64,000 nucleotides of DNA, taken from assembly GCA_964019335.1 (NCBI GenBank), contig OZ025652.1:1-64000 (forward strand), written 5' to 3'. A program made the position numbers and the translations under genes. Under the pieces are notes generated by a model. It did not search any database. It was given only the letters and a program-made list of their open reading frames with translations, and was not told the origin of the DNA. Below, one piece after another: positions 26,801-53,061 of the stretch. This DNA comes from Diplonema japonicum. Lineage: Eukaryota > Protista > Euglenozoa: Diplonemea. Positions within the stretch are counted from its first letter, which is position 1. Every line of letters begins with the position of its first letter.

Positions 26801-29800
26801 CGGTGCTTGGGCACAGGCACCTCTCACCCATTGGCAACGAGTGTCCCTTGCGCACGACACCTCGTCCTTGAAGACTGCAGGGTCGCAACTCTTCTTCTGG
26901 CAGGCACCGCCACCCGCCACGTCCGAGCAAGGATCCCACTCGCAGAGAGCATCAGAATCGCAATCGTCCTTCACAGTGTGCTTGCATGGCTTCTCGACAC
27001 AAACCTGTGTCGCCCCGACCCACTCGCACACTGCGGGGTCCGCTTCGCACTCGGTTTCCGTTGACCAGTCGCAAGGACGCTCCACACACTCGGGCTTCTT
27101 CGCGTCCCAGTCGCAGCGAGGGTCTTTCTCGCATGTCACCTCGTCGCTGTAGGGGCAGATGGTCTCCACCCAGCACGATGCCTCAGTGGTGCCGTTTACA
27201 ATCTTCCACTGACAGTGGTTCACCGTGTCAGCCGTGCACTTTGGCTCGTCGCAGTGTGCCACGCACGGAGAGTCGACGCACGACAGTCCAACCGCGCTCC
27301 ACACACAACCCGGGTCTGTGGTGCACTCCGTCTGCAGCAGGTGCTGTGGACAAGGCTTGTGCATGCCCGCCTGGTCCTCACTTGATGCACCGGGCATAAG
27401 GAGTTGGCCCCATTTGCTGTTCGGGTCGCAGATTCCGTTCAGAACCTGGTCCGGCATCTCGTCGATCAGCACGTTCATGAAGTGGTCGTCCTGTGGGTTG
27501 GAGGTGATCGGTTTCAATGCAGCCTCGGCATCGATGTCAAGCTTCGTGTGCACTGCAGCCTTCCTCAGCACTACACCGAAGACTTTGACGCCCTCCGTGG
27601 TGAGGACGGCCTTTGCGGAGGACAAGGAGGCGGTGTCTTTGATGGCCCCGTCGGTCACAATGATGAGCACCTTCTGTCGTGTGGAGGGGGAGAACTGGAA
27701 CATTGTACCAGCCCAGTTCAAACCTGTCGCGATGAAGGTACTCCCCTGGATGTAGTTTGCCTCGTGCCAGTCGATGTCCTGCTGCAGCTCCGCGAGGTCG
27801 CCCGTGAGGGAGCCCTCGGAACCCACACCAATAGGCGTCTTCACAGCCTCAGGAATGGGGCCCGAGAACTGAATGATCCCCATCCTCATCCCGCCGTTCG
27901 GCGCAGTCGAGGCTTTTCCGACTGTGTGGTCCTCTCCCGTCAGGGGGAGCGTGTTCACCCAGTCGCGGATCATCTCCATCATGGCGTAGAAGCCTTGCGG
28001 GTGGCGCCCGAAAGCCTCGCTCATCGAGCCAGACCCGTCGAGCAGCAGGACGACATCAAGCACAGGGCACTGCCCGAACTTGCTCTCCACGCACTTCGGG
28101 ACAGTGGCACGCACATCCCAGTAGCACCTGTCCTCCGCGTGGCACTTGCAGCGGTCGTCGGAGAACTTTCCGCATTCCTTCTCCACGCACTTCGTCTTAG
28201 CCGTGTCCCACATGCACTCATCCTCCGCGTTGCATTCCACGGTTCCCTTGAAGGCCCTGCAAGGCTTCTCCTTGCACATGGCGGGAGAGCTGCTCACGTC
28301 AAATCGGCAGTCCGGGTTCTTCGAGCACTCCTTCTCGTTGGGGTATAAAACGCAAGGGGCGATCACGCACGGGTCCGTTGTCCCACCCACCCAGTCGCAG
28401 AATGGGTCTGCCTCGCATGTGGGCTCAGTCCCGTAGTCGCACTTCTCCGTCACACACACGCCACCCACGAGGCTGATCAAACCGCCACAAGCAGTCTTCG
28501 TTGCGGCGCTGTCGAGAGTGGTACCGTAGTTCCAGCTGAGGCTCCTCTTCCCGCCGTCCTTCGACGACGTTGTGAACGCAATGCTCGCGACGATCTCCGC
28601 GACCTTCGCACCGTCGCTTACCCCCGTCACAGTCAACGATCCCTCCGCTGCGTCCCAGTTCACAGCTGCGTTGTTCGCACATGCCCCACAGGTGAGGGAG
28701 TCCTTCCCATTCACGTAGCCATCGCCAATTCTGATGAATGCAGAAGTCTTTGACGCGCACGCGCAGCTCGCGTCGCACGCTGCCCCCGGGAACGGCTTTA
28801 TCGGCATCAGCACCTCGTACGACACTGCCCCGGTCCCTGCATTTGTCGACGCGCCCGAGTACACCAGCCACTCGCACCCGGTCTCCGCCTTGCACTCCGT
28901 CTCCTTCGTGTGCTGGCACGGGATCTTCTCGCATTTCGGTGTTGGAAGCAGCGACCACTTGCAACCGTCAATGTCCTGTTCACATGCCGCCTCGTTGTCG
29001 TGAACACAAGGCTTGACCGTGCACACTGCCGGCTTCGCGACTGCGGAGTCCGACGAAGGCGGCTGGCACACGCACTTCCAGTCCCCGAGGCTCGACGCGT
29101 TGGTGTTCGGGTCGAAGCACAGCTGAGCACAGTTCAGTACACCCTTACAGTCGGCCGTGCACTTCCAACCCTTCTCTTTGCACTCATCCACCCCGCACTC
29201 TGCGGGCTTCCCGGTTGCCGTGGACGTCGAGGGGGGCTGGCACTTGCAGACCCAGTCACTCTTGCTTGACTCCGCGGTGTTGGGGTCCTCACAAATCTGC
29301 CCGGCGTCTTTGCAGGTGTTATTCGAGCACGTGTCGCAGGTCTCCACACACTCGTTGAGTTCGCACGTCGCCTTTTGCGCGACTGCCGACCCCCGGGCAG
29401 GGGCCGTACACAGGCACTCCCAGTCGTCCAGCTTGCTTGTGTCCAGGTCCCTGCAGGTTTGGCCCTCGGCGGTGCACGTTGCCCCGTGCTCCACGCACTC
29501 GTCAACTGTGCACACAGCGGCCTGGGCCGTCGCCTTCCCAGTCGTCGGTGGCGGGCAGCTGCACACCCAATCATCGAGGCTGTCAGGTGCCGTGTTGGGG
29601 TCGAAGCACGTTTGCTCGCAGTTGGGGGTGTTGGGTGCCACGCAGTTGGCCGTGCAGTTGTTCTGAGGCTCGTCGCACTCATCGATCTCACACACCGCGG
29701 GCTTCGCCGTTGCAATGTGCGTCGACGGTGGCGGGCACTTGCAAACCCAGTCGCCGAGGCTTGTCGCCGTCTTGTCGGGGTCCTCGCAGGCCTGCTTTAC

Positions 29801-32800
29801 GCTGCTGCACGTGTCGTTCGCGCAAGTCGGGCAGTTCTGCACTTTGCACTCGTCGATGAGACACCTGGCCGGGCGCGCCGTTGCATTCCCGGTCGCGGGA
29901 GGGGTGCACTCACACGTCCAGTCATTCAGGGTCTGCTGCTTTGAGTCCTTGCATGTCTGGCCCTCCGTTTTGCATACAGAGTCCTTCTCCTCGCACTCGT
30001 CGTACTCGCAGTGCATCACGGGACCGCCCACCTGTTTACCGGTCGCTGGCGGCGGGCACTGGCACTCCCAGTCGTCCATGCTCGCTGTCGTCGGGTTCGG
30101 GTCGTAGCATACCTGCCCGCAGTCCAGCGTCCCGGGCTCACACATTTCCGTGCATTTCCCAGCCTTCGACGCCTCCTTGCACTCGTCGTGGTCACACTCC
30201 GCGACCTTCCCTGTCGCCGTGTGGTTCGACGGAGGTGGACACTTGCACACCCAGTCGTTCGTGCTCTGTGGGCTCGTGTTCATGTCATCGCAGGTCTGGC
30301 CAGCGGCGGTGCACGTATCGTTCGCACACGTCGAGCAGTTCTGCTTGCATTCATCGTACACGCACTCCGCCGGCTTCGCCGTTGCGTTCCCGGTGCTCGG
30401 GAGCCTGCACTGACATTCCCAGTCATCGGCCTTCCCGAGATCGGGGTCGTAGCAGTCTTGCTGCTTCGCGAGGCAAGTCGCCCCGTGAATCTCACACTCG
30501 TCAAAGTGACACATAGCTGTCTTCCCAGTCGCCTTGCCCGTCATAGGGGGCTCACACTCGCAGGTGAAGTCCGACGGGGTGTTGCAAACCGTGTTTGCGT
30601 CGTAGCAGCTCTGGTTCGCCCCGGCGCACACCGTGTCGCCCACACACTCATCGCAGATACAGATCGCAGGCTTCCCAGTGGCTGAGTTGTTCGCCGCAGG
30701 CGGCTTGCACGTGCAAATCCAGTCCCCGGTGCTTGTGGCGTCAGTGTTGGGGTCAGTGCAGGTCTGATTTGCGTCAGAGCAGGTTGTCCCCGCGCACGTG
30801 GGGCACGTATCCACACACTCGTCAAGCACGCACGGCTTCGCTGCCGCCGCCGTCGCCTTCCCGGTGCTGGGCGGCGGGCACAAGCACTCCCAGTCTCCAA
30901 GCTTCGTCAAGTCTGGGTCATTGCACCTCTGTCCTACAGCTGTGCAGGTTGCGTTGTGCTCCTTGCACTCGTCGACCTCACAGGTCGCGGGCGTTGCTGT
31001 CGCTTTCCCGCTGTACGGCGTATCGCACTCACACACGTAATCATCGTTGCTGTTGCAGTCTGTGTTGGGGTCGAAGCAGGCCTGTCCAGCCGGGGCACAC
31101 TTCTGTGCCCCCTTGCACTCATCGCACACACACGTTGCGGGCTTCGCTGTCGCGCTCCCCACCGCGGGAGGCTTGCAGGTGCACGTCCAGTCGTTTAAAG
31201 CGTGCACACCAGTGTTCCCATCCTCGCAGGTCTGCCCCGCATCTTCGCACGCCTTCTTCGCACACGTCGGGCAGGTCTGCACCACGCACTCGTCAAGCGA
31301 GCAGTTTGCCGGTGCACCCACCATGGGGGTCCCGGTCCAAGGCGTCGGGCACTCACACTCCCAGTCCCCGTACTTCGTGGTGTCGGGGTCTTTGCAGGTC
31401 TGCCCCTCTGCCTGGCACACGTTTGCTGGATTCGTGGCTGTCTGCGCACACGTCGGGCACACCACAACACACTCGTTCGTTTCGCACACCATTCCGGCGC
31501 TTGTCCCTGTTTGGGGTGTCCCGGTGGAAGGTGGGGCGCACTTGCACACCCAATCCCCCTTCGACATCGGGTCCGTGTTCGGGTCGTCGCAAACGTGCCC
31601 AGCGTCCGTGCACTTCTTCGCCTCTGGGTCTGTCTCGCACTCACCAGGGTACTCGCAGTCGGCAGGCTGCATTGTCGCAGACGCATTCTTCACCGCAGGA
31701 GGAACGATGCAGCGGCACTCCCAGTCGTTCTTGCTGCTCAGAGACGGGTTCGGGTCCACGCACTCCTGCCCAGCGTCCGCGCACTTCTTCTCGTTGTCCG
31801 GTGTTTTGCACTCGTCGACAACGCACGGCGTTGCCACCTTCCCTGTCGCGAACCCGACCGACGGCGGTGGGCACGTGCAGATCCAGTCGCCCGTGCTGCT
31901 TGCCGCAACGTTCGGGTCGTGGCAGGTCTGACCTTCCGACTTGCACGTCCCCTTCGAACAGGTCGGGCAGTCCGCTACACACTCGTCTATCACGCAAGTC
32001 GCAGCGTTCGCGATGGCCACCCCGGTGCTGGGTGGCGGGCACGTGCACGTCCAGTCGCTCGTCGAGGTCATAGAAATGTCCGGGTCGTTGCAGGTCTGGC
32101 TCTGGCTGCTGCACGTGTCGTTGGCGCACGTTGCGCACGTGCCAACGCATTCGTCGATGGTGCACTCCGCAGGCTGTGCCGTTGCCGTACCGTTCATCGG
32201 CGGCTTGCAGCGGCATTCCCAGTCACCTGCCTTGGACTGGTCAGGGTCGACACAGTCCTGGTTCATGTTCGTACAGGTGTCTCGGTGCAGGTCACACTCG
32301 TCGACATCGCACGAAGGGGTAACAGGGCCACCAACCTTAGGAGGCATCTGCGCAGGGGGCGGGCACGCACACGTCCAGTCGCTCAGCTTGCTGGTGTCCG
32401 GGTCGTTGCAGATCTGCGACGCGTTTGAGCACGCATTATCGGCGCACGTGGGGCACGTCTCTACGCACTCGTCGATGCGGCAAATAGCAGCGTTTCCGAT
32501 GGCCACCCCGGTGTAGGGAGGTGGGCACGTGCACGTCCAGTCCCCGGTTGAGTGCATCGACTTGTCTGGGTCCTCGCAAGTCTGGCTCTCGACCGAGCAC
32601 GTAGTGTTCGCGCAAGTTGCACAGGAGGCCACGCACTCGTCGATCATGCACTCCGCGGGCTTCGCCACCCCGCTCCCATTCAAGGGCGGCTTGCACCTGC
32701 ACTCCCAGTCACCCGCGACCAACGGGTTCGGGTCCACACAGACCTGGTCCACGTTTTCGCACACATCCCTCAGCTTGTCGCACTCATCTTCTTCGCACCC

Positions 32801-35800
32801 AGAGGCAGGCTTCCCCTGCGCGGGCGGCTGCTGCGAAGGCGGCGGGCAACTGCACAGCCAGTCGTTCGTCTGCGTGGTGTCGGGGTCGAAACAGGTCTGG
32901 TTCTGGTCGCTGCACGTCGTCCCAGCACATGTCATTCCTGTGCAGTTTGCGGCGCACTCGTCAAGCGAGCATTTTGCAGCGTTCGCAATGGCAACCCCGG
33001 TGTAGGGAGGCGGGCACGTACACGTCCAGTCCCCGATCGAGGTGCTTGAGATGTCCGGGTCCTCGCAAGTCTGGCTCTCGTCCGAGCACGTCGTGTTCGC
33101 GCACGTTGCACAGGATGCCACGCACTCGTCAATGGTGCACTCCGCGGGTTTCGCTGTCGCGCTTCCGTTCATCGGAGGCACACATTTGCACTTCCAGTCA
33201 TCTGCAACCAGCTGGTTAGGGTCTTCGCAGACCTGCATCTTGTTCTCGCACACCGCCTTGTGCAAGTCACACTCGTCCACCTCGCAATTCATCACCGGCT
33301 TCAAAGGCGAGGGAGGCTGCTTTGAGGGCGGCGGGCAGTTGCACGTCCAGTCGCTCAGCGTCGTGAAGTCAGGATCGTGGCAGGTCTGGTTGTGGTCGCT
33401 GCAGGTCGTGTTTGCGCACGTGGGGCCCGTACACAAGGGAGAACACTCATCCAGCTTGCAGATTGCCGCTGCCGCCGTTGCCGATCCCGTGAAAGGGTTC
33501 TGACACGTGCAGGTCCAGTCGCCTGTGGAGTGCGCGGCCTTGTTAGGGTCCTCACAAAGCTGGTTCTCGTCTGAGCACGTTGTGTTCGCACAGCTGGGGC
33601 ATGTCTTCACGCACTCATCGAGTTCGCACCATGCCACCTGTGCGGTCGCGCTCCCGTTCGACGGAGGCACGCATTTGCACATCCAGTCTCCCGTAACCGC
33701 CAGGTCCGGGTCCTCGCAGGTCTGGCCGGCGTTGAGACAGGTGTCCTTATGCAGATCGCATTCGTTAAAATCGCAGTTGAGAACGGCAGCAGCCACCAAA
33801 CTCTGGTTCGAGGGCGGTGGGCAAGTGCAGGTCCAGTCACTCAGCGTCGTGGTGTCCGGGTCGTGGCAGGTCTGGTTCTTGTCGCTGCAGGTCGTCTTTG
33901 CACAGGTACTGCAAGTCTGGTCCACACATTCGTCGATCTGGCAGATCGCGGAGTTCGCCACTGCCACACCCGTGAAGGGGAGCTTGCAGGTGCAGGTCCA
34001 GTCGCTCAAACTCGTCACCGTAGGGTTCGGGTCGAAGCACTCCTGGTTCTTGTCGCTGCAGGTGGTCTTCGCGCACGTCGGGCAATCCACCGCGCATTCG
34101 TCGAGCACGCATACCGCTGCCGCCTGCCCCGGCTGCGTCGTGGGGTCCCTCGTTGCCGGCGGAACGCAGTCGCAATAGAAATCGTCTGAGCAAGGTGTCG
34201 GGTTCGGGTCCATGCAGAGCTGGTTCACCGCTCCGCAGGTAAGGTTCCCCTTCTGGCCGTCCCCGCATTCGTCGTGCTGGCACACACTGTTTACCGAGTC
34301 CCACTGGCACATCGCGTCGGCCTTGCACGCGTTCTCATTGTACACGGGATCGCTGGTGGTGTACGCACAGTCGCAGTTAGGGTCCGGGGCGTTAGTGCAG
34401 ATGCTGCCGTTCACCCAGGTGCAGTTGTTGCTGGGGTCCGTTCGGCATGCAGAGTCGTTGCAGTGGAGCAAACATGGCGAGTTCAGGCATACCGCACCCA
34501 CATCGGACCAGATGCAGCCAGGATCCTTCTTGCAAGTTCCCTGGGTCTTGTAGTCTGGGCATGGGAGGTGAACACCGGAAGAGGGCTGCGGGGGGTTCTG
34601 AACGATCAGGTGTCCCCAGGGACCGTTGGGATCACAGATGCTGTTCATGAGCCCGGGGACTTCGTCGATCATTACGTTTTTGAAGTGGTCATCGTGCGGG
34701 TCGGAGGTGATCGGCTTTAGGGTCTTCTCTGCGTCCAGGTCCGCTTTCGTGTGGATCGTGGCCTTCCTCACCACGATACCAAATACTTGCACGCCCTCCC
34801 TGTCGAGCTCCGCCCTCGAAGTGGCGAGGGAGTTCGGGTCGAATATCTCCCCATCCGTGAAGATGAACAGCACCCTCTGTCTCCCGTCCACGGGCGATGC
34901 ATGGAACATGTCTGCCGCCATCGTCAGACCCTGCTCAATCATGGTGCCGGAGCCCATGTAGTTGTCCTCATGCCAGTCCACGTCGTCCTCGAGCTCCTGC
35001 AGTGCGCCGGAGAGCCTGCCACCGGTACCCACACCACCGGGCGTGGTCCTCGCCTCGCTCTGCCAGTAGTTCCAACCGGAGAACTGCACGACTCCGACAC
35101 GCACCCCGCCGTTGTCCTTTGCAGAATTTATCCCCACAGTCGCATCCTCTCCGTTCAAGGGCAGGGTTTCGATCCAGTCCCTCATCATTTCCATGAGGGC
35201 GTCGAAGCCGTGTGGGTGGTTCCCGAACTTTGCGGACATCGAACCCGACCCGTCGAGCACTAGCACGATGTCGAGGGTAGGGCACTCGCCGAACTCGATT
35301 GCAACACAGGCCCCGGTATGCTTCAGCCCAGCCCCGGGCTTCCAGTAGCACTTTTCATGCTGGTTGCATGGGCACATCGTAGGGAACTTGCTGCAGTCCA
35401 AGTCCACACAGGTCTTCGACGTTGTGTTGTACATGCAGTCACTCTGCTCGTCACACTTCTGCTGCGTTTGGATCGCCGGGCATTTCTTCTGCGAGCAGAC
35501 CGCGGGGTTCGTGGTGATGTCCCACTTGCACATGGCGTCCTTGTCGCAGCACCTTTCATCACGGAACTGGGCACACACGCGGTCCTTGCACTTCGAGTTG
35601 GGTGCGTCCCACACGCAGTGAGCGTCGGCATCGCAATCGCCTTTGGCAGTAAAGTAGTCGCAGCCCTTGCTCATGCACTGCAGCTTCGTTGTGTTTCCGC
35701 ATAGCGCGTGATCCCATTTGCACGCAGGGTCCGCCACGCACACCGACTGAAAGGTCGAGGAGCAGGGTTCCACGACGCACACATCCTTTCCGTTTTGATT

Positions 35801-38800
35801 CACCCACGCACAGCCGTCCTTGTCGGCGTCACAATCGGCTTGGTTCTTGTTCGGGGTGCACGGGGGCAGGATGCACTTTCCGTTGTCCCACACGCACTGG
35901 TCAGGGGAGTTTACGCACTGGGTCTGGTCAGTGTACGCGCACTTCGTTTCCTTCCAGCACTCCGTTCCGTTCCACTTGCACAGGTTTGCCGTGTCCTTGA
36001 TGCACGACTGCTCGTCACAGTGCGCCATGCACGGGGAGTCCTGGCACGCAGCACCTGCGGCGTGCCACTCGCACCCGGGGTCTGCGTTGCAGAGGTGCGA
36101 GTCCGTGTGGTGCGGGCACGGGGCGTGTACACCCGCCTGTGGCGGGGTCTTCACGATCAGGTGCCCGAACTTTCCGTTCGGGTCGCAGATGTCCCCCAGT
36201 ACCTTGGTCGAGATCTCGTCCAGCATGAGGTTCTGGAAGTGGTCGTCGTGAACATCGGAAGTAATTGGCTTTAGGGTTGCCTCGGCATCCCAGTCAGCCT
36301 TCGTGTGCGCCTGCTGCTTTCGGATCACGATACCGAAGGTCTGCACGTCCTCCTGGTCCAGCACCGATCTTGCGGGTCCGAGGGAGTTCGGGTCATAGAT
36401 TTGTCCGTCAGTAAAGATGATGAGGATCCTGGGACGAACAGCATGCTGATGCGACGCATCGAACATGTCCCCTACCATCGTCAGCCCCTTCTCGATCATG
36501 GTACCGTCACCCATGTAGTTCGCCTCGTGCCAGTCAAGGTCGCGGCTGATCTCCCCAATGTCGCCAGACAGGTGGCCCCCGGTGCCGGTACCGGCAGGAG
36601 TCTGGATCGCCTCTGACCTGCCCGGGATAAACCACCAGGGGTTCCTCCCAGAGAACTGCACGAAACCGAGTCTGAGCCCACCGGAGGTGGGGCCTGCACC
36701 AGTGTTTGTTGACGCCTTCTCTCCAGTGAGGGGGAGGGTCTTTGCCCAGTCCCTCAGGATCTCAACCAGTCCGTAGAAGCCGTGCGGGTGGTTCCCGAAC
36801 CAGGCATCCATCGAGCCAGACCCATCCAGCAGCATGATCACGTCCATCGTGGGGCACTCACCAAACTTAGAGTCAGTACACTTGTGGTGCGCGTCGTCGT
36901 AGTAGCAGTCGGGGTGTGCCCTGCACGGGCACTTGTCCAGTTTGCTGCAGTCCTCTTCCACGCACTCCAGCTTCCCGGAGTCCCACAAGCATTTGCTGTC
37001 CGCATCGCACTGGTCCTTCGCCGCAGCTGTCGGGTACGTCTTAGGGCAGTACTTCTCACCGCATACAACGGGGCTCGCGGTGAGGTCCCAGTGGCACGCA
37101 TCATCGTGGTCGCAGCACTTCTCAGTGGGGTACTTTGCGCATTTCCCAAGCTCGCATTTAAGCTGGTTCGTCCACACGCACCAGGTGTCCTTCACACACC
37201 CTGCCTGTGTCGCGTGATCAGGCTGCGAACACCTTTTCGGCACACACTTCTGGTCAACAGGGTCAGCGCACACCTCGTCCCACTCGCAATCCGCATCCGG
37301 AACGCAGTCTGTTTTGTTCGCGTGGAAACACGGCGTTTCCACGCACTTCGCGTTCGGTTGCACAGCTGTGTCCCACGTGCATTGCTTCCCAAGGTTCTGA
37401 CACGCCCCCCGATCAGTCGCCTGACATGGGCCTTTAACGCATCTGGGGTTTTTCGTCGCGTCCCACGAGCAGCCCGTGTCGGTGCAGTCCTTCTGGTTGA
37501 GGTGGTCCTTGCATTCGGTCTTCTCGCACTGGAGAGTGCCGTTGTTGAACTTGCACTTGTTGGTGGTGTCAGCCACACAGTCTGTCTCCCCGCAGTGACG
37601 GAAGCAAGGGTGGTCCTCGCAGGCAATGGTGATTGTGTTCCACTGGCAGGTCGAGCGGGCGTTGCAGTCTGGGATGCTTTGGATCGTGTCGCACGCGGGT
37701 TCTGTGTTGGGCTTCGTAGTCGAGCCGCTGGTGATGAGGGCACCGAACACACTGTTCGGGTCACAGAAATCGTCGAGCACCTTGTGCGCCTCGTCGATCT
37801 GCATCATCAGGGCGTGGCTGTCCTTCGGATCGGTCACGATCTCCTTCAAGGCGTTCAAGTTCAGCTGATCCAGGAAGTTGGGAGTTCCCCTTGTCAGCAC
37901 GATACCAAAGGTCTGGACCCCCTCAGCCTTCAGCACTGCTCCAGCCGGGCCTAAGGAACCCCTGTCCTGGATCATGCCGTCCGTGAAAATGAGGAGGATC
38001 TTCTTCCTGTAGGCGGGGGAAGACTTGAAAGTCTCCCCCGCGAATTCCTCCGCCTCCTTCACCAGGGTCTGCGGCCTCCGGTTCACACTCTCGTGCCAGT
38101 CCAGGTCTGCCAAAAGCTGGGCCTTGTCACCGGTGAGCTTTCCACAGTCATCAGCCGGGTCGCGTCCCGGTTGTGTGTTCATGTTGCTGCTAGAGGGAAT
38201 ACCGTCCCCTTTGCCCATGACGGGGGGGCTGCACGCGCACGACTGGCATTCCGCGAGCCTCACACCCTGGTCCCACTCGCTGAATCCAACGCGCACCCTG
38301 CCGTTAGTGTCGGTCGAGGTCACGCCGGCCGCCTCGCCGGTCAAGGGGAGCGCCTGCACCCAGTCCCTGAGGGCCTCCATCAGCCCCTCGAAGCCGTTGG
38401 GGTGGGTCCCGAACCTGTTATTCATCGAGGTGGATCCGTCGAAAGCCACCACCACGTCCAGGTCAGGGCACTGCGTGAAGTGTTGATCTCTGCACACGGG
38501 TTTCGTCGGAACGGAGCGGTCCACCACACACCTCGCGTCAGCCTGGCAGTCACACATCCTGTCTGTCCCCATCGCAAGGTCGTTGTATGAGTCACACGTC
38601 TTATCCACGCACTTGTCGCCCGTGGAATCCCACATGCACGTCCCCTTGGGGTCAGCGTTGCAGCTCGTCGCATCGGTGAAGGTTTTGAAGCAGTACTTCT
38701 CCTTGCAACCCGCGCACCCAGTAGGGTCCCAGTGGCAGTCGGTGTCGTGGTTGCATGTTGCTTCCGCTGCGTGCTTGTAGCACTTCGACTCGGCGCACGA

Positions 38801-41800
38801 TGAGGTCGCTGCTGTCCACTTGCACGCCGAGTCCGCAATGCACACGGACTCTGTGTTTACACCGATGCAGTGCTGCTTGTGGCACTTCGAGCTCGCTGCG
38901 TCCCATTCGCACCCGTCACCGCTGTTCGTGCAGGCGTTACTTTCGGTTTGGTCGCACACCTTCTTCATGCAAGTGTTGGTCTCGCACTTCCAGTCGCACT
39001 TCCCGCTCACGTGGTTCAAACAGTTCAGCTTCCCCACCACCGTCGTGCAGTCAGGGTCCTTCTCCTCGCAGGTCTGTTTCGTGGGGTCCCATTGGCAGTC
39101 CTTGTCGGCGGTGCACGTACCATCCGTGAAGTGCAGACACTTCTTTGGCACGCACGTCGCCGGCGTCGCCGTCGTGTCCCACATGCACATGTCGTCTGGG
39201 TCGTTCTCGCACGCGTTCTTGTCCGGGTACTCGCACACCTTCCTCTGGCACTTGTCCACGTCCCAGAAGCAGTGGTTCGCAGTGTCCTGTTCGCACGGTA
39301 CCTCAGCGCAATGCTCCTCACACACCGTCGACCCGCAGTAGCCGCTCCCCACAGGGTTGGCCGACCCCGCTGTACACGAGATCACGCTGCCGGACAGCTT
39401 GCAGTTCGTGCAGGTCATACCTGCGGACACTTGTGCCGCTGGGAGCTCCTGGCAGTTCAGGTTCGTGCAGCCGTTACCCGGGCACGTAGTGGGGGCTGGG
39501 GTCTTCCAGTTGCATGCCTGGTCCGACCTGCATTCCAGCTTCACCCCCCACTTTGCGCAAGGAACGGCGGCAGACTGTGCGGGAGGCGTCGTCGTCCCAC
39601 CACCGCCCGCGTTCTGGTTCTGCGCTTGCTGCCTGATAGCGGCACCGAACCTCCCTGCCGGATCGCAGAAGTCGTTGAACACCTCACTCAACATGTCATC
39701 CAGTGGCACGTTCACGAAGTGGTCGTCGTGGTCGTCGGAGGTCACCGGCTTCAAGGTGTCCTCGGCGTCGATGTCAGCCTTCGTGTGGGCAACACCCTTC
39801 CTCACAACCACCCCGAAGGTGACGACCCCCTCGGCGTCAAGCTTCTTTCTGATTTCGGGGATCTCCTTGCTTTTCTGCGGCTCCAAGGGGTTCATCTGCC
39901 CGTCAGTGATAATGACAAGGACGTGCGCGCGGTGCGCCGGCGATCCATGGAAGATGTCCACCGCATCATCAAGGGCCGCTGCCATGTAGGTGAGAGACCC
40001 CATGTAATTGGCTTCGTGCCAGTCAATGTCGTTCTCCAGCTCGTTCAGATCACCCGTAAGCTGCCCATTCGAACAGGTTTTCCCCGAGGAGAGCCTGGGC
40101 ATGGTGCAGCCCCAGTGCTTCGTGTCGCAGCCGTTCGCGCCATTCCTGCACACCCAGTACTCGTTCTCGATGGAGAACTGCACGAAGGCGATACGGAAGG
40201 TCCCCCCCTTCACGTCCGACTTTATCCCAATCGTATTGTCCTCGCCAGTCAAGGGGAGGGTCCTGACCCAGTCCCTCAGCATCTCGAGCATACCGTAGTA
40301 GCCGTGCGGGTGGGTCCCGAACCTCGCACCCATGGAACCGGAACCGTCGAGCACGAACACAACGTCCAGGTCCGGGCAAGCAGACACGTGGTTGTCCTTG
40401 CACTTCGGGGCCGGGGGCGTCACCGCGGGATCCCAGTAGCAATTCTTGTCTGCAATGCAATCGCAGTTCTTCGCGTGGTCAGAGCAGGTCGCGGGGGAGC
40501 AATACGGCCCCTTCGAATCCGTACCCGGCTTGCAGGTCGGGTCCGACTCGCATGCTGCCTGGTTGATGGTCCCCATCACCGTAGGAGAGGTCCCGAGGCC
40601 CGGGTACTTCGTGTTGTGGTCCTTGGTGCACTGCGTGGGCTGGCAAGACGGCGGCGTTGTCCCTGTGTTCCAGTGGCATCGGGGATCGTGGTCGCACTTC
40701 ACCTCGTCGTCCTTGTACTGAGGGCAGTAGTCGGTCACGCACTGGTTGGTGCTATCCCAGTGGCAAACAGCGCTGGTCCCGCAGTCCGCCTGATTCAGGG
40801 GCTTGCATTTGTCTTCAGAGCAGGTTGAGGTGGCCGGGTCCCACACACAGCTGTCGCAGTTTTTACAGTCGGCCTGCGTCTTCGCGAGCACGCACTTCTT
40901 TTCCTTGCACATGGTGCCCAGCCACTCGCAGTCCGTGTTGACGGAGCACGTCCCGGAGTCCGGGTATGAGCACCTGGTGTCCCGGCAGACAGTGCTGTCA
41001 CAGTCCCACTCGCAGTTTGGGTCCGCCTTGCACACCGCAGGATCGGTCGTTGTCGAGCACGTCGGGATCTGCTTGCACACGGGGGGGTCCAGAGACGTGT
41101 CCCACTGGCAGTTTGCGGTGCTGTTCTGGCACTTCTCCTTTACGAAGAGCGAACCACAAGGCTTGGGGTCGCACGTGCTACCGTCCCACTTGCACAGCAG
41201 GTCAGGGTCATTCTCGCATGCGTTCTGGTCGGTGTAGTCGCACACCTTCCTCTCGCAAGTGTCGCCGGGGGTCTTCCAGCCGCACGCAGCGTCAGCATCA
41301 CAGCAGGCTTTGCCGCAGCACTTTGAACAGTGGGTCTCCTCGCACGTACCGTCGATTGACGACTGCACGGAAGCACCACAGATGACGGTTGCCCTCTGGA
41401 GCTTGCACTTGCTGCAGTCATACATCCCCTTGTACTGCTGCGGTACACCTTGGCAGTTCAGTTGCGGGCAACCGGTTGCGGAAGAGCAGGTCGCGATCTT
41501 CGGCGTTTTCCATTCGCACAGAGAGTCGGCATTGCACTCGTCCTTGAAACCCCAGGTCGCGCACTGGTAGTGCTTCGCGTCAACGGGGGGGATGAGGGTC
41601 TTCCCGAACTTCGAGTTCGGGTCGCAGAAGGGATCCAGCACCTGCCCCGGGATCTCGTCCAGCATGAGGTTCATGAAGTGGTCGTCCTTGGGATCCGTCA
41701 CCAGCGGCTTTAGCTTCGCCTCCGCGTTGTCGTCCTGGAAGGTGTGGTGGGAAAACCTCCTCATCACGATCCCGAATACAACCACGTTTTCGTCGCGGAG

Positions 41801-45413: not shown

Positions 45414-46103
45414 CTACTTGCAGCCAGGAGGCTTCGTCCCTTCCCAGTCATTACAGACAGCTTCGAGGAGGTTGTCGCTGTTCTTTAGGACCTTCCCGTT
45501 CAAGGTAAAGTAGGGCACGTAATCCATGCCCTTCACCATGACGGTTGTTCGCGCAGCAACAGCCATGAGGGCCTTCCCGGTGGGCCCCGACTCGCAAGAG
45601 GCAATTGCTGTAGGGCTCAGGTTGTACTGCTTCGCACACTTCTCCATGTGCGCCTTCGACCCCGCACCGGGCTCGTGAGCCTCGAAGCAATCCACAAAGG
45701 GCATGTACTTCCAAGGGTTGTTGTTCGTCATGTTCTTCACGCACACCTCCACGAGGTTCCCGTAGCACTCCCCGCTCCCGTGCTGGCAGTTTATCGACCC
45801 TGTGAAGCAGTCCGATGGGATTGGCGGCGTTGCCTTCGGCCCGCACTTCCTCTTCCAGCACGTGTAGTCGTTCGACGGGTCTGCGCACTCCTTGATCTCC
45901 ACGAAAGCGTTCCCAAAAGGCACGTACTCGAAGTCCATTATCCCCTGGATGCCAGCTGCGGAGAGGGTCTGATTCACAGGACCCTTAACCGCCGCTTTGC
46001 ATCCGGGTCACAGAGACTCCCCGTAAAACATCACATCCACCTTCTGCTGCCCAGACACAGCTATGGCAAGCAGCAGCACAGAAGCAGCGGCGCGAGTGAG
46101 CAT
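45414..46103 (-). CDS. GILT (gamma-interferon-inducible lysosomal thiol reductase) family protein with in-frame TGA at the catalytic Cys; probable selenoprotein, 229 aa
   Basis: ATG at 46103 gives MLTRAAASVLLLAIAVSG (signal peptide) QQKVDVMFYGESL-TGA(46010-46008)-PGC, continuing in frame into ORF 45414-45977. That ORF carries FEYVPFGNA and the GILT signature CQHGSGECYGNLVEVC, plus YVPYFTLNG. Confidence 0.9.
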
Positions 46104-46409: not shown

Positions 46410-47408
46410 TTAGCAATCACAGTCAAAGCAGCCGCACTGCACGTCTATCCTGGTGTACCCATCGGAGGTGCACGTCTGCACCACCTTCTTCCCTGGCTTG
46501 GTGAGGTTCGCCTTGACGTTATTCTTCCAAGCACCAGATGGCTTGCAGCAGTCCATCATTCGTGTCAAGCAGTACGAGAGATCCCATGGCATTGACTGGC
46601 ACGACACATCTGTGTTTGGGAACCCAGGGAGGGACGGGCCGTCGTACCCAGCAGGGTCATCCGTGCGCTCCAGGTACGTAGTGTTCACCAAAGCAGGCGG
46701 GCATTTCACACGCTTCATGTTTCTAATAGTAGGGTTTGAAGGCTGTGCAGGCGGCTGAATGCGCACCTTCTTGTCAAAGCTGTACTGGCACAGGCTCACT
46801 AGATCGTCGCCAGCAGCTTGCATCGGACTGCTCTCAGTTGGGTATTTCGGGAGCGCGGCGCAGTCGGACCTAGAAGCAACACCCCCGTACATGTTGCCCC
46901 ACGAAGCTGTGCTACCGGGATACATCATGTTACCCCCACCGGCGCACTTGTTGTTTGCACCGAACCCACCATCGCCAACCTGCATGTCGAACTGGTTCCC
47001 TTGCACATCGCCTCCTGTGTTGATTGACTGCACAATGATATCGCGGTCCACTCCTTCAACTGTAAGTCGCAGGCACATTCCAAGGCCGCCCATTGGGTCA
47101 TTTGACCCGAAGCTCCCCACTCCCAAATATACGGAAATGCCCTCCGTTCTATTGAAGTCCCGCTCAGCTGCGCGCATGTATGTCGACCCGAAAGTCCAAT
47201 CCATGCAAGCAAACGCACTGTCCTGGCATAGGTATCCTGTCGTTGTCCCTTGATTCTTACAAAGAACCCCAGGTCTACTCCCTGCGTTGAAACACGATCC
47301 ACAGCTATCAGAACACTCCGAGTACTTGTCTGTAGCATACACAGAGCAGTTTCCCTTCTGGCCCTTCACAAGCATCGGTGACAAGGCCAGCAACAGAAGT
47401 GCTTTCAT
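46410..47408 (-). CDS. Secreted GH45 endoglucanase-like protein with circularly permuted motif order
   Basis: Signal peptide. GH45 core motifs IVQSINTGGDVQGNQFDMQVGDGGFG, WGNMYGGVASRSDCAALP and NPT...VKCPPALV..T..ERTDD are present. The motif that is N-terminal in canonical GH45 (TRYWDCCKPSCxW) occurs near the C-terminus as TRMMDCCKPSGAW. Confidence 0.88.
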   Translation of the reverse strand: MKALLLLALSPMLVKGQKGNCSVYATDKYSECSDSCGSCFNAGSRPGVLCKNQGTTTGYLCQDSAFACMDWTFGSTYMRAAERDFNRTEGISVYLGVGSFGSNDPMGGLGMCLRLTVEGVDRDIIVQSINTGGDVQGNQFDMQVGDGGFGANNKCAGGGNMMYPGSTASWGNMYGGVASRSDCAALPKYPTESSPMQAAGDDLVSLCQYSFDKKVRIQPPAQPSNPTIRNMKRVKCPPALVNTTYLERTDDPAGYDGPSLPGFPNTDVSCQSMPWDLSYCLTRMMDCCKPSGAWKNNVKANLTKPGKKVVQTCTSDGYTRIDVQCGCFDCDC

Positions 47409-47694: not shown

Positions 47695-48924
47695 TCAGTT
47701 AAATACAATATTTGATGTATTTGTCTGTAACGATAAAAGTGAGAATTACAAACATACATTACCCGTCATCCGCTTGCCCTGGGTCTTCGCAGGCGCGGTG
47801 CGGTTCGGTTCGGGTGAGCGTGCTTTGGCAAGACGTGAAGAAGGGTTCTGGTTTTCGGCCTGTCGTGTTGTGCATATGTGCATGGCCCTGATCTCACATA
47901 CCATGACGTTCGGGTTCGCATAAGCAGCAGGAGATGCCCGCACAGGCCGCAGCCTTGGTTGCGCATCCGAAGGTCTGCTGTCATTAAATGTGATGCTGGA
48001 CTTATTTGACAGCCCAGCCACTTGGCTACCGCGTAATTTAACAGATTGCACAGTACCACCGACGTAAGGGGGCAACGTGTTCATCTCGGGGCTCATGCTG
48101 CGCCTGATACCTGACGGTGATGTAGACGTTGTCTTGATAATGTTTGGATTAGCCCTAGCTGCATCTCTATTCGCAAGACACTTCCTCGTCCCTAAGCTAG
48201 GCTTCTTCCTCGGCATGGGAACAACAAACCCTCCCTCCTCATCCTCTTCGCAGACGGAAGAGGTAACCGACTTCTTAAACCTGGTGCTTTCGGAGCGAGA
48301 ACGAGCCTTCGATGGTGACCGCATAGGAGAAGCCTGGCTGTGTCGCATCGGAGATTGCCGATAAGGAGAAGGGGTGGGATGGGGGCGAGGCACGGGTGCT
48401 TGCGGAGAGCATGATCTTACCGACACTGTAGAATAATCAAGGCCTTCTGCAGCCATTTCGTTTCTCTGCCTCCAAGACAGCTCAATCCTTGCCACGTCAA
48501 TGGGGTTTACCCCCATGCCGCAGTGGTGAATGAGCTGCTTCAGAGTGCTGCTACTCACCAAAACAAGATCGCGCTCGCTTAAATTGAACTTGCGGGCCGA
48601 AGAAACGAAATTCTTCCAAGCTATGATCTGCGCGTCGACCACCTGAGAACGCGACGACGAGCGAATAGGTGAGACGGCCCTCGGTTCTGGAACGTGATCT
48701 ACATGTACATAACTAACCGGGCTGACAGGAGAAGGGTACCCCATACGAGGGGAAGGCGCCCTCTCTGGCGTGCCTTGCAGTGTTGTACGATCCGCCCGTT
48801 CTTGCTCGAGCTGCTGGGTCAACTCGTCTATTCTGTATTGCAAGAGCTCGGACTTCTCCCGCTCCTCTGTTGCTTGTAATGCTGCCACTTCATACTTCCG
48901 CAGCAGACCCTCGTTGTTCTTCAT
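47695..48924 (-). CDS. Hypothetical protein: N-terminal coiled coil, Ser/Pro/Arg-rich disordered region
   Basis: Long open frame; likely ATG at 48924 after a CAG acceptor-like site. Predicted GTATGT...CAG micro-introns at 47860-47901 (42 nt, in frame) and 47725-47757 (33 nt) give the C-terminus TNTSNIVFN and TGA at 47697-47695. Confidence 0.65.
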
Positions 48925-49003
48925 GTTCCCGACCACGTTGGCACCTGAATGCTTCAAAGCAAGGAAAATAAAGGTTCATCTTGAAACAAACTCTAAATTA
49001 AAG

Positions 49004-52000
49004 TTAAGAGGACTCTTCTGAAACAGCCTCTGAACCCCATGCAGCTGAGTTGACGGAGCTCCTCGCAGAAGGCGAATCATCTCTCCTTTCCTTGTAAAGA
49101 GACGCTTGCGAGCTTCGGAGGCGGTCCTGCCAAACACCTTTAGAGTTTCCTGTCATTGACTTTGCTGTCAAAGCTTCGGTCCTGCTAACAGACATAGAGG
49201 TAGCTCGCTCTGCCATCAGCTGCGAGTTCAGATCACCCGCTTTAACCAATCGCCTGATGGTTCCCCAGCCCCCCTTTTCTTTGATGCGTCCAAGAGATAT
49301 AGGCGGCAATTCCTGAGTGGGATATGTTGATCAATACTCTTCGCTAATATACCTGCACCATCTTATCATCATGTTTAAGCTTCAACAAGTCTATCTCCTG
49401 CGTATTGGAAATGCTTATCCCGGCAAAGGAAGCAAGTGCCTCCGCCATGGTTTCGTCCTGAGCGCAGTGTTTGCAAGCGTGCATCATACCTCCTTGTTGA
49501 ACTCAGTGTCATCCAGTTTGTTGATAAACTGCAGAACACCTAACACATCAGATGACCCCTCAGTGGTGAAGATCGGCACGCAAAGCATCTATGGCGGCGG
49601 AGTGAATAATGGAAGAAACACTATATACCTGCGTTGTTTTGTATCCATTCTTTTTATCCCACTGCGGGTTGAAAAGGGGACAGTCATAGGCATCCTTTAT
49701 ATTGACTATCTGCCCGGTGACTGCTGTATTACCAGCGACACCCGTACCAAGAGGAAGCCTGATTATAGTCTCTGTTTGTGTGTGTGGATCGATGATGATC
49801 GTCCACATCTCTTGATTCTTGTTGTCCACAAGGAAAAGAGACGACCTGTCGCATCTCAACAGCTGTGACGCTCCTGTTTGTTGTGAAAGGGGAGGAAGTG
49901 TGCACACCTGACATGATGCAAGCAACCATAGTCTTCATGTCCATCGACACGTCAGAGGCCATCTCACGCGCAACACGAAGCAGTGTCTGTCGATAATCTC
50001 TATTTGAAATGGGCATACATGGGTCGCTTCTTGGTTCCTCTTCAGTGCTTCAAACATTTCCGCGTGTCCCAGATGGATGGCCGTTTGCTTTCCGAACAAA
50101 CTTAAGATCCTGGTGTCCCGCTCGTCGAAGGATCCGTGTGCTTTGTTGACAGCCTGCATCACCGCCACAACTCTTCCGTCAGTCCTTTTTACAGGGCATG
50201 CCAAAATGTTCCTCGTCCTGTATCCAGTTCGCTTGTCGACCTCCTTGTTGAATCTCTCATCGTCGTAGGCTTCGGGGATATTGACAATGGTGCCCTTCGT
50301 GGCACAGTACCTGAAATATTTGAAAGAAAGCAGTCGAAAAAAAGGCATACCCCGCAATACTACTTTTCTCATCCATGCTGATACTGATGTTCTGCGTGTC
50401 ACCATCTGGTATGAACAGCAGCTGGTGTTTGATTTGATCGACAGTGAAGATAGCTGCGCGGTCACATTGAATCAATGCCTTTACAGAGTTCTTAATGAAG
50501 CTGATAATGGTAAGTTTAGGTATAAACGCTGTGTGGCATACTGCTTTGCTGCAAAGACACTGCTTTCCTCACTCAGGTTAGTAATTGCAAGGCATATCTT
50601 CCTCATAGTCTCGGAGTCAAGATCTCTGTGGTCTGTGTGGTTGGGCTGCAAAGGCATACGCGAAGTCATCTTCGAACTCAAAATTGTCTGCCCCCATCAC
50701 CGCAATGTTGTTCATAAATTCTTCCTCTGGAGCCATAAAGGAGCTTCTCCTCCGCCGCTTTGGTCCATTAGCGGCAACTGGAAGTGTCTTGCTGCCCTCC
50801 AAATCTGCCCCGTCTGCTCGCTGCCCTTTCTTCAGCCTGAAGTAATCCAATATCCACATGCTGAACTGTTCCGCGTGTTCTGCATCTGTCAACACTTTGC
50901 AGTGTTCTTTTATAAACTTGAAACGCTCCTTTCCACCTCCTACGAAATCTGTCACTGCGATTTTATACTCTTTTTCTAGGTCCAAAACCTCGCCACCAAT
51001 AGTAATGTCTTGCACCTGAACGGTTGAACGTATGCTGTTGATGGTGTAGTTCAGCTGGCTTGATGGATGCGGGAAGCTAGGAGCCTCTTCCGGAAGCTCT
51101 CTCACACTCAGGTTCAACATCTCCTTCAACCAATAACCGCTCATCTCCACGACCTGCACCTTTGTCTCGTCTGGGAACCAATTGAACACATCACCGATGC
51201 TGATAGGGCCTTGTTCTTTCAATATCTTCCCGGATACAGCTGCTCCTCCGAGAACAGCGCAATCGGCCCCTGTTTCCATCTGCATTAAGTCTGCGAGGAA
51301 GTTGGTGAGAACACCTTCACTAAATCTGCACGTTTCTTCAGTACTGTCCAGAGGGACATTGGTCCTTCCTATCACCTTCCCCATCTTTTCAGTCATCTTT
51401 TCACCATACCGCTGCACCAATTTGTCTATCATCTTGTTCTCTGGCATCTCTGTTTCAATGGCGTGCGTCTTGCACGAGACAGTTGGTTGTTGTATTTCAT
51501 CGAGCCTTATTTGCACTTCGCTAAGCCATCGGAATTCTTCACCTGATTTCACAATGCGCCTGTCAAGATCTTTCTTATAACTGTGGTCGTGCCCCCCTAG
51601 AAGCAAGTCTATCGACGGGCACTTATCCGTCAGCTCTTTGTCCAGTGCCAAACGGTTGTGTGTCAAAGCTAGAACAATCTCAGCACCTCTCGCCTTAAGG
51701 CTCTTGGCCTCCCTCTCTCCTACTTCGTACATGTCGTGATACACGGCTTCGCCCTTCGCCAACCTTGGACAATGTGGGAGCCAATTTTCACACAGCCCCA
51801 CAATGCCCACCATGATCCCGTTCCACTCGAGCAACTTACTCCGTGTAACATCCCCCAGAGGTTGCCCGTCTTTCCCATCCATGTTCGTCATCAGCCATTC
51901 GGTATTACTCCCGGCAAAGATATACTCCCCTTGTGTGTAACCATGTATTATTCTCTCCAAATTACGGAGCCCAAAATCAAATTCATGGTTGCCAAAAACA

Positions 52001-53061
52001 CCGTAGTGGGTGTTGATAAAGTTCAGGGCGTCAACCATCTGCTTCCCCTTTGTGATAACGGACATCAAGGACGGGCCCACAAAGTCACCTGAGAAGAGAA
52101 CCAAAGGGTTTTTCGTACGCCTGAGTACATCCAGCTGGTGGTAGAAGCGTGTGATGCCACCGCATGGCTCCTCTGACTTGAATACGCTTAAATGGTACAC
52201 GTCATTAAAGTGCACTATGTCTAGCACACGGCCACCTGTAGGCCGTAGACTGCGTCTGACCTTACCCCTTTCACTCTGGAAAGCCTTGACCTGCTGCTGC
52301 AACACGCACAGCAATATCTCGTCCACCATGTCTTCATCAGAGGACTGCACCTCGTAAGTGTCATACGGAATCGACAGACGCCTCTTACCTGTGGTCAAAG
52401 CTGCTGCAGACTGAGTCGGATCGGACTTCGGGCGCTCAACTCGAAGGACTATGGTGCCAAATCTCCCCAGACATGCACTCATGATGCTGATGAGGGGGAT
52501 CTTTGTAAACGATTTGTTTTGTCTCATCTTGGGGCTTTGGATGAGGTGAAATAGAATCGCATCACTGGTGACTCTCAGTTGAGTAGGTTGTGCTTCTTTT
52601 TTACCAGGCAGCAAGATTCTGAGATCCTCGTCATACAACGCGACGCCTTGCCCTATTGAGAGTGTCGAGCTCACCCTCGCCATTGCAGTGGCAGTCGTAG
52701 TCCGTTGCAAAGAACTACCGCGCTGGCGCAACTCTGCTGGCACGGCTTGCTTTTGCAACCCCGGGCTCTCGTACCTTTTATCCGAAGCTGTTAGGCTTCC
52801 ATCGCTTACCCTTTGCTGGTGCCTTGGGCTTTTTGCAGAGACGGGCTTTGGAACATCCGTTTGAAAGCTAACAAAAGACTCCTTCGTAACCAAAGGCGGT
52901 ATTTCTAGTGCTTGCCTTTCAGGTTTCGGGCCACCAAGCATGAACAGTAGCTGGTGAAGCTCTTGCGGCGTATTCCATCTTCTGTGCTTGCTGTTCGCAG
53001 GTCTTGTACCTGGAGCGCTAGGATGTAATGGGCCATCTGGAGGTGTGGAGTCTAAAACCAT
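49004..53061 (-). CDS. Cytosolic 5'-nucleotidase-family metallophosphoesterase fused to two tandem PDE-type GAF domains
   Basis: Exon 1 (53061-50660) carries HFNDVY, FSGDF, FGNHEFD, LTH and GGHDH, then a 5'-nucleotidase C-terminal domain (EGVLTNFLAD, GPISIGDVFNWFP). Eight GT-AG introns (50626-50659, 50501-50541, 50311-50350, 49987-50018, 49874-49907, 49589-49628, 49458-49489, 49313-49352) restore one frame with two GAF domains (NKAHGSFDERD; NKLDDTEFNKED), ending TAA at 49004. Confidence 0.85.

Follow-up and report, generated by a model that had tools for sequence, protein, structure and literature searches.

The first 64,000 nucleotides of contig OZ025652.1 of the diplonemid Diplonema japonicum (positions 1 to 64,000, hereafter the window) carry on the minus strand an open reading frame (ORF; Table 1) whose product we regard, with a probability of about 0.85, as a secreted, disulfide-rich, endoglucanase-like protein of glycoside hydrolase family 45 (GH45) that is closest to subfamily A and is a natural circular permutant. 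The segment that opens a canonical GH45 domain, and that bears the motif of the catalytic base, follows the core in this protein instead of preceding it.

GH45 is a small, industrially used family, and its mechanism is debated because not all of its subfamilies possess the base. Its members are inverting enzymes with a universal catalytic acid, an Asp. In subfamilies A and B the base, also an Asp, directly follows strand 1 (it is Asp10 of HiCel45A); an Asp serves as assisting residue in subfamily A only, its counterpart in subfamilies B and C being an Asn; and GH45 enzymes and expansins conserve a Tyr (Tyr8 of HiCel45A, Tyr22 of GtCel45A) at the second position before the base (PMC10909974). 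A circular permutation of this domain had been put forward in an initial annotation of the window. All the refutation tests that it named were examined and none of them refuted the proposal, which is supported by the sequence comparisons and the structural model described below.

Linear order of the GH45 segments

Membership in GH45 follows from the Pfam model PF02015 (Glyco_hydro_45), which scores 51.8 bits on the whole protein (cut-off 27; E 1.3e-13). The better of its two matching stretches aligns residues 46-192 with profile positions 26-178, so that the first ~25 positions of the profile, which hold the base motif, are unmatched at the N-terminus. Recomputed from the ORF, the acid motif NTGGDVQGNQFD occupies residues 130-141 (codon of D141 at 46986-46988), YGGV residues 174-177, and the normal GH45 end motif CPPALVNTTYLERTDD residues 236-251. 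After 30 intervening residues comes TRMMD, the beginning of the base motif TRMMDCCKPSGAW (residues 282-294; codon of D286 at 46551-46553), followed by VVQTC at 309-313 and CGC at 325-327. These motif positions, the two Asp codons and the 30-residue gap are as the initial annotation had them, and it was likewise correct that both catalytic Asp are present, in swapped order, in one ORF with a signal-peptide-like start.

Four comparisons agree that this swapped linear order is more than chance. In a phmmer search against PDB chains, the springtail GH45 chain 5h4u_A aligns twice, with query residues 280-327 matching chain residues 23-66 and query residues 122-188 matching chain residues 119-181. 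When the protein is compared by BLASTP with a canonical GH45 domain that the same genome encodes, query 111-241 pairs with residues 88-206 (E 8e-15) and query 282-322 with residues 3-43 (E 2e-5). A hidden Markov model (HMM) made from 120 canonical GH45 proteins together with one canonical domain of the same genome (the canonical HMM) matches residues 282-324 of the window protein with its positions 3-39 at an independent E-value (i-E) of 7.7e-6, and in 120 of the 121 family members the match to its positions 3-42 lies C-terminal to the core. In profile-profile comparison, the core (query 110-243) aligns with canonical residues 87-208 at E 7e-18, and the C-terminal segment, for which E was 2.6e-5 at first, reaches E 9.2e-10 and a probability of 96.5% when the block 280-329 is compared with canonical residues 1-52. 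Both the core and the moved segment are thus significant alone, and they are so in swapped order. The linker between them, residues 252-279, has no counterpart in canonical GH45 alignments.

The same arrangement is found throughout the relatives of the window protein. A word-based protein search returned 260 related clusters, and our homolog counts cover 120 of these, all of which have a precomputed PF02015 match. In 117 of the 120 listed homologs the acid motif comes before the base motif; the reverse order occurs in none, and none has two base motifs. Hence the canonical order, with the base segment before the acid segment, is absent from the window protein and from these 117 homologs. The three exceptions still have the CxxCxC tail of the family.

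Predicted barrel and the N-terminal extension

AlphaFold2 models were made with 30 and with 78 sequences, giving a predicted local distance difference test score (pLDDT) of 81.3 and 91.9 and a predicted template modelling score (pTM) of 0.84 and 0.90, respectively. With 78 sequences the whole mature chain forms one compact, confidently packed unit, whose long strands are residues 93-99, 112-117, 123-130, 140-143, 227-234 and 280-284. Five of them match canonical strands by sequence (around FALGFAA, CYELTF, MVVQSTS, HFDL and FSFRQVQ), and the sixth, CLTRM at 280-284, is the counterpart of canonical STRYW. The successive 10-residue blocks of residues 251-280, which cover the linker, have pLDDT values of 97, 94 and 88, and residues 281-320 lie at 93-97. 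The initial annotation had asked if the C-terminal DCCKPS segment completes the barrel. Strand 280-284 is part of the single compact model, and with the local pLDDT and a pTM of 0.90 this is consistent with the segment belonging to the domain.

Superposition of the model on solved structures with VIA-align gives a Z-score of 12.7 against 5glx and of 12.3 against 4eng (12.3-12.7 for 5glx, 4eng and 6mvi), with a root mean square deviation (rmsd) of 2.7 Å over 161 aligned residues. Over the subfamily-A chains as a whole, Z is 11.3-12.7, rmsd 2.7-3.0 Å and identity 28-31% over ~160 residues. All the best structural matches belong to subfamily A, and the subfamily B chain 5xca reaches a Z of only 3.7. 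These sequential superpositions never use residues 1-18 of Humicola EGV, the stretch that carries Asp10. The significant Foldseek matches are likewise to GH45 subfamily A only (ten GH45 entries, E 6.6e-7 to 1.7e-5), with poor sequential TM-scores of 0.47-0.59 and an rmsd of 5.5-10 Å. The predicted fold is the double-psi beta-barrel of the solved GH45 structures.

The N-terminus does not supply an equivalent of the moved strand or of its Asp, a possibility that the initial annotation had named as a refutation. The N-terminal extension is modelled confidently (pLDDT 88-93), with one helix at residues 32-38 and no beta-strand in residues 1-60. The signal-peptide stretch has low pLDDT, as expected for such a peptide, and hydrophobic N-termini are also seen in the homologs. 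Residues C39, N41, G47, G58 and Y59 of the extension are invariant in an alignment of 78 family sequences, from which all conservation counts given here are taken, and no invariant Asp or Glu precedes D70 in alignments of 30 and of 78 family members. The Pfam model finds no match in the N-terminal 51 residues alone. Profile-profile comparison of the extension with canonical residues 1-52 and with the C-terminal block is not significant (E 0.18), there is no support for a duplication relic that would tie the extension to the C-terminal part (E 0.14-0.2 and E 0.18), and a second functional copy, with a base motif N-terminal of the acid motif, is present in none of the 120 listed homologs.

We also considered the N-terminal sequence ATDKYSECSDSCGSC as a degenerate form of the strand TRYWDCCKPSCGW, with Glu31 as the base. 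This candidate was rejected: E31 and the neighbouring acidic residues are unconserved, the profile comparisons are not significant, and ATDKYSECSDSCGSC is helix or coil in the confident model.

The permuted family, its catalytic residues and its cysteines

The named members of the permuted family span three supergroups: Diplonema ambulator, D. papillatum and Artemidia motanka in Discoba, the vampyrellid Leptophrys vorax in Rhizaria, and the dinoflagellates Apocalathium hangoei and Symbiodinium natans in Alveolata. Many marine meta-omic contigs also encode members. When a tree is built from the core that all share, a single branch with 100% support in the SH-aLRT (Shimodaira-Hasegawa-like approximate likelihood ratio) test parts 49 permuted from 54 canonical sequences, and this separation is compatible with the permutation having arisen once. 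Within the family the window protein clusters with sequences of D. japonicum and D. ambulator (99%), which D. papillatum joins next, and the dinoflagellate sequences form a clade of their own (96%). Given this grouping by named taxa, there is no sign of recent transfer.

The genome (62.5 Mb, 132 contigs) contains a permuted paralog at L004:1282-2280 on contig C103, which is also 332 residues long and is 79% identical to the window protein. Its sequence agrees in full (100% identity) with a complete Trinity ORF from Diplonema japonicum in EukProt, from which it follows that the permuted architecture is transcribed as one mRNA and that the genome belongs to D. japonicum or to a very near relation of it. 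The same genome also holds GH45 domains in canonical order, at the loci L001, L002 (contig C39) and L003 (contig C25), which begin with KTTRYWDCCKPSCAW and match positions 3-213 of the same Pfam family at E ~1e-52. In the tree they lie beyond the 100%-supported branch from the window protein. These canonical domains sit in long open frames of 914, 2387 and 1307 residues, which are probably multi-domain tethered cellulases.

With regard to catalysis, D141 in the acid motif aligns with the canonical HFD motif, the residues of the subfamily-A base motif are present and invariant and align with the canonical motif, although at the C-terminus, and the subfamily-A type of assisting residue is represented by D134. 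Both D134 and D141 are invariant, as are C280, T282, R283, M284, D286, C287, P290, S291, C313, C325 and C327. K289 is present in at least 90% of the sequences and M285 is nearly invariant. In the linker P252 is invariant and C270 nearly so, and in the tail C332 is invariant and C330 occurs in 99%. The invariance of base, acid and subfamily-A-type assisting Asp points to selection on catalysis. As D141, D286 and D134 are kept together with T282, R283, C287, K289, P290 and S291, we read the protein as a putatively active inverting beta-1,4-glucanase.

Other positions of the active site have changed. The Tyr conserved before the base is replaced by M284, so that Tyr-Trp of the canonical motif has become Met-Met, and canonical HFD has become QFD, with Gln139 in place of the His of the SNHFD motif, which we take to be His119. 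Most members moreover have DCR/PSG where the canonical form has DCC/PSC. Judged from sequence, the Met-Met, QFD and DCR/PSG changes may alter the -1/+1 subsites. The suggestion of the initial annotation that the change from Tyr-Trp to Met-Met and the extra cysteines change specificity is speculation.

In the permuted chain the part that makes up canonical residues 1 to ~52 of all characterised GH45 enzymes, comprising strand 1, the TRYWDCCKPS motif with the base Asp and the Cys loops, forms residues 280-329 at the C-terminus, and after the signal peptide and extension the chain starts at about canonical position 40-55. As we propose it, the fold is as follows. The C-terminal strand 280-284 would take the place of barrel strand 1, and D286 as base would then lie opposite D141 as acid and D134 as assisting residue, allowing the usual inverting mechanism on beta-1,4-glucans. 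Permutants usually originate when a gene is duplicated in tandem and its outer parts are then lost, and the present family may have arisen in this way, with both ends lost. There is no tandem GH45 intermediate among the matches listed and no significant relic of a duplicated overlap, for which reason such an origin is offered here only as a hypothesis.

The family has 20 conserved cysteines. By comparison with the disulfide map of EGV, C287/C155, C112/C236 and C183/C207 would correspond to canonical bridges, and ~12 further cysteines lie in the extension, linker and tail. The new termini of a permutant adjoin in space, and for this reason the cysteines of the extension, linker and tail would staple the new chain ends. 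Co-variation of cysteines gave two pairs only. One is C50 and C61, which are gained or lost together (r 0.87). The other is position 172 and insert column 526, whose cysteines always occur together (r 1.00) in 22 of 78 sequences (28%), including those of dinoflagellates; this pair probably forms an extra lineage-specific disulfide that joins the WG(C) loop to the PAGxCKYNP insert. C287 and C155, neither of which ever varies, are uninformative in this respect. C288 (46545..46547), the second Cys of DCC, is confined to the D. japonicum/ambulator-type clade, ~10% of the members, and is Arg elsewhere. It has no co-varying partner, which leaves the proteins of this clade with an odd count of 21 cysteines.

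Alternative readings, genomic setting and significance

Several observations weigh against a permuted, active GH45 enzyme in the window. That strand 280-284 lies in the barrel is deduced from the list of secondary-structure elements, pLDDT and pTM. The initial annotation had expected two non-collinear hits with the Pfam GH45 model, and this did not hold in that form: the Pfam model finds no match in the C-terminal 80 residues alone, and non-collinearity is seen instead with the purpose-built canonical HMM. As the conserved Tyr has become an invariant Met, activity or specificity may differ. The window copy was not found among database proteins, and the documented expression is that of its paralog. 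HMMER tentatively extends the alignment of the window protein over residues 32-68, which it pairs with positions 9-50 of the HMM (accuracy 0.66), and the VIA-align superpositions set in at residue 40 or 46 of the model, paired with residue 19 or 36 of EGV. A short overlap at the breakpoint (~canonical 37-52) or a very degenerate leftover copy may accordingly be present at the N-terminus.

It is conceivable, although unlikely, that the fold is permuted and the protein is not a hydrolase, but an expansin- or loosenin-like wall-loosening or glucan-binding protein. The loss to Met284 of a Tyr that GH45 shares with expansins and the replacement of the canonical His of SNHFD (presumably His119) by Gln139 fit such a function, and in the literature searched we found no report of activity for any family member. 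However, expansins, loosenins and subfamily C have no base Asp (PMC10909974), whereas here base motif, acid and assisting Asp are invariant in all 78 sequences.

We consider it very unlikely that the protein is a complete or near-complete GH45 domain with an extra partial repeat, in which residues 20-68 would be a diverged version of canonical 9-50 and the C-terminal block an accessory module. In the window protein HMMER does carry the alignment of the core as far back as residue 32, paired with HMM position 9, the superposition that begins at model residue 40 pairs it with EGV residue 19, and BLASTP of the N-terminus against the C-terminus gives a weak match (8/27 identities, E 0.2). Yet the N-terminal HMM alignment has low posterior accuracy and is not repeated in other members (in P0083, residues 49-72 align with HMM 40-62 at i-E 5.7), the N-terminal profile is not significant against either the canonical or the C-terminal profile (E 0.18), and the N-terminus lacks both a beta-strand and an invariant acidic residue. 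Even a partial repeat would leave the TRYWD strand and the base at the C-terminus only, and the invariance of the C-terminal motif is not what one would expect of a remnant in decay.

An assembly or gene-model chimera of two adjacent GH45 copies, which the initial annotation had also named as a refutation, is excluded for practical purposes by a single unbroken ORF with one acid and one base motif, by the same architecture in 117 of the 120 listed transcriptome and metagenome proteins from several supergroups, by the identity of the C103 paralog to a complete transcript ORF, and by the low identity (only ~32% over the core) between the window protein and the canonical GH45 copies of the same genome.

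A broader reading of the permutant, which we hold tentatively and at somewhat less than even odds, is that permutation of the barrel founded a fourth, hitherto overlooked GH45 lineage, with one origin and a wide distribution in marine protists (diplonemids, dinoflagellates, vampyrellids and much uncultured plankton). It would be marked by a terminal disulfide cluster (an extension with 5-6 Cys and a CGCxDCxC tail) and by a changed -1 subsite, in which Met-Met replaces Tyr-Trp and Gln replaces His, with a substrate preference unlike that of fungal Cel45A, for example for dinoflagellate thecal cellulose or algal wall glucans.

Among known proteins the closest are those of subfamily A (Humicola insolens Cel45A/EGV, 2eng-4eng; Thielavia terrestris, 5glx; Neurospora crassa, 6mvi; Melanocarpus, 1l8f; springtail, 5h4u), with which the permuted family has in common the barrel fold, the GGDxxGNxFD acid motif, the assisting Asp, T-R-x-x-D-C-x-K-P-S, YGGV and the CPxxL end motif. 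It differs from them in having canonical residues 1 to ~52 after the core, in Met-Met instead of Tyr-Trp before the base, and in the added Cys-rich N-terminal extension, ordered linker and CxC tail. Natural circular permutants are known elsewhere, such as the Fibrobacter succinogenes GH16 lichenase in relation to Bacillus lichenases and the GH70 glucansucrases in relation to GH13. These follow the same principle, in that fold and catalytic residues are kept with another chain start, but their folds, a beta-jelly roll and a (beta/alpha)8 barrel, differ from that of GH45. Expansins, loosenins, cerato-platanins and barwin/kiwellin have the barrel core in common, but they are in canonical order, give weak structural matches (Z 2.0-2.7), far below the likeness to GH45 subfamily A, and are without the base Asp (PMC10909974).

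Relatives of the window protein are automatically annotated as GH45, 'endoglucanase type K' or 'cellulase', so that their family membership was already known, as was natural permutation in other glycoside hydrolase families. We found no description of a permuted GH45 or of a permutation of the GH45 double-psi beta-barrel in the literature searched. 'GH45' and 'circular permutation' occurred together in one review on carbohydrate-binding modules, whose title and abstract do not concern such a permutation, and GH45 goes unmentioned in the text of the paper on the D. papillatum genome.

Table 1. The GH45 gene, its parts and further ORFs of the window (positions are those of the window; residues are those of the GH45 protein)
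Feature	Coordinates	Strand	Description
GH45 ORF	46410..47408	-	332 aa; intronless, single uninterrupted frame; one acid motif and one base motif
Signal peptide, residues 1-16	47361..47408	-	MKALLLLALSPMLVKG; predicted, read from sequence
N-terminal extension, residues 17-60	47229..47360	-	Cys-rich, family-specific; C21, C32, C36, C39, C50; helix 32-38
GH45 core, residues 61-251	46656..47228	-	D134, D141, YGGV block, end motif CPPALVNTTYLERTDD; five long strands
Ordered linker, residues 252-279	46572..46655	-	28-30 residues; bridges old C-terminus to old N-terminus
Relocated GH45 N-terminal segment, residues 280-329	46422..46571	-	strand CLTRM 280-284; TRMMDCCKPS with D286; VVQTC313; DGYTRIDVQCGC
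C-terminal tail CDC and stop codon	46410..46421	-	C330, C332; CxC end kept across the family
GILT-family thiol reductase homolog	45414..45977	-	gamma-interferon-inducible lysosomal type; E 5e-14
ORF without Pfam matches	47746..48957		neighbour of the GH45 gene
814-aa ORF	50617..53061	-	Metallophos and 5'-nucleotidase C-terminal domains
12,986-aa single ORF	5804..44764	-	VWA in the N-terminal 1500 aa

Between 38 and 59 kb of the window all genic-looking ORFs of more than 180 aa lie on the minus strand, an arrangement consistent with a euglenozoan polycistronic unit. Upstream of the ATG of the GH45 gene there is a T-rich tract followed by AG dinucleotides, which would fit spliced-leader trans-splicing. 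The GILT-type reductase gene has the same orientation as the GH45 gene, with its 21 cysteine codons, and comes directly downstream of it. This pairing of a disulfide reductase with a disulfide-rich hydrolase is noteworthy but probably coincidental. The 12,986-aa ORF, directly downstream of the GH45 gene cluster, has two VWA stretches and EGF/teneurin-like EGF modules in its C-terminal 1500 aa and would encode a giant secreted or surface adhesin-like protein. No neighbour suggests an operon-like functional link with the GH45 gene. An Rfam scan of the window found nothing.

The permuted family would indicate that the GH45 double-psi beta-barrel tolerates re-threading, with the base delivered on a strand from the opposite end of the chain. 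It offers protein engineering a natural permuted scaffold, whose new termini could serve for fusions, and, with Tyr8 and Trp9 replaced by Met-Met, a natural experiment on which neighbours of the active site are dispensable. Since GH45 HMMs cover only part of these proteins, residue checks that presuppose the usual order of segments would mistake them for proteins without a base. Marine metagenomes and metatranscriptomes contain the family in abundance, and diplonemids are among the most species-rich marine heterotrophs (PMC10161547). From the taxa in which it occurs and the richness of diplonemid genomes in carbohydrate-active enzymes (PMC10161547), its likely role is the digestion or remodelling of cellulose-like walls; possible targets are the algal prey of diplonemids and vampyrellids and, in dinoflagellates, the thecal plates. 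The permuted GH45 family is thus probably a part of the means by which planktonic protists digest or remodel cellulose-like walls.

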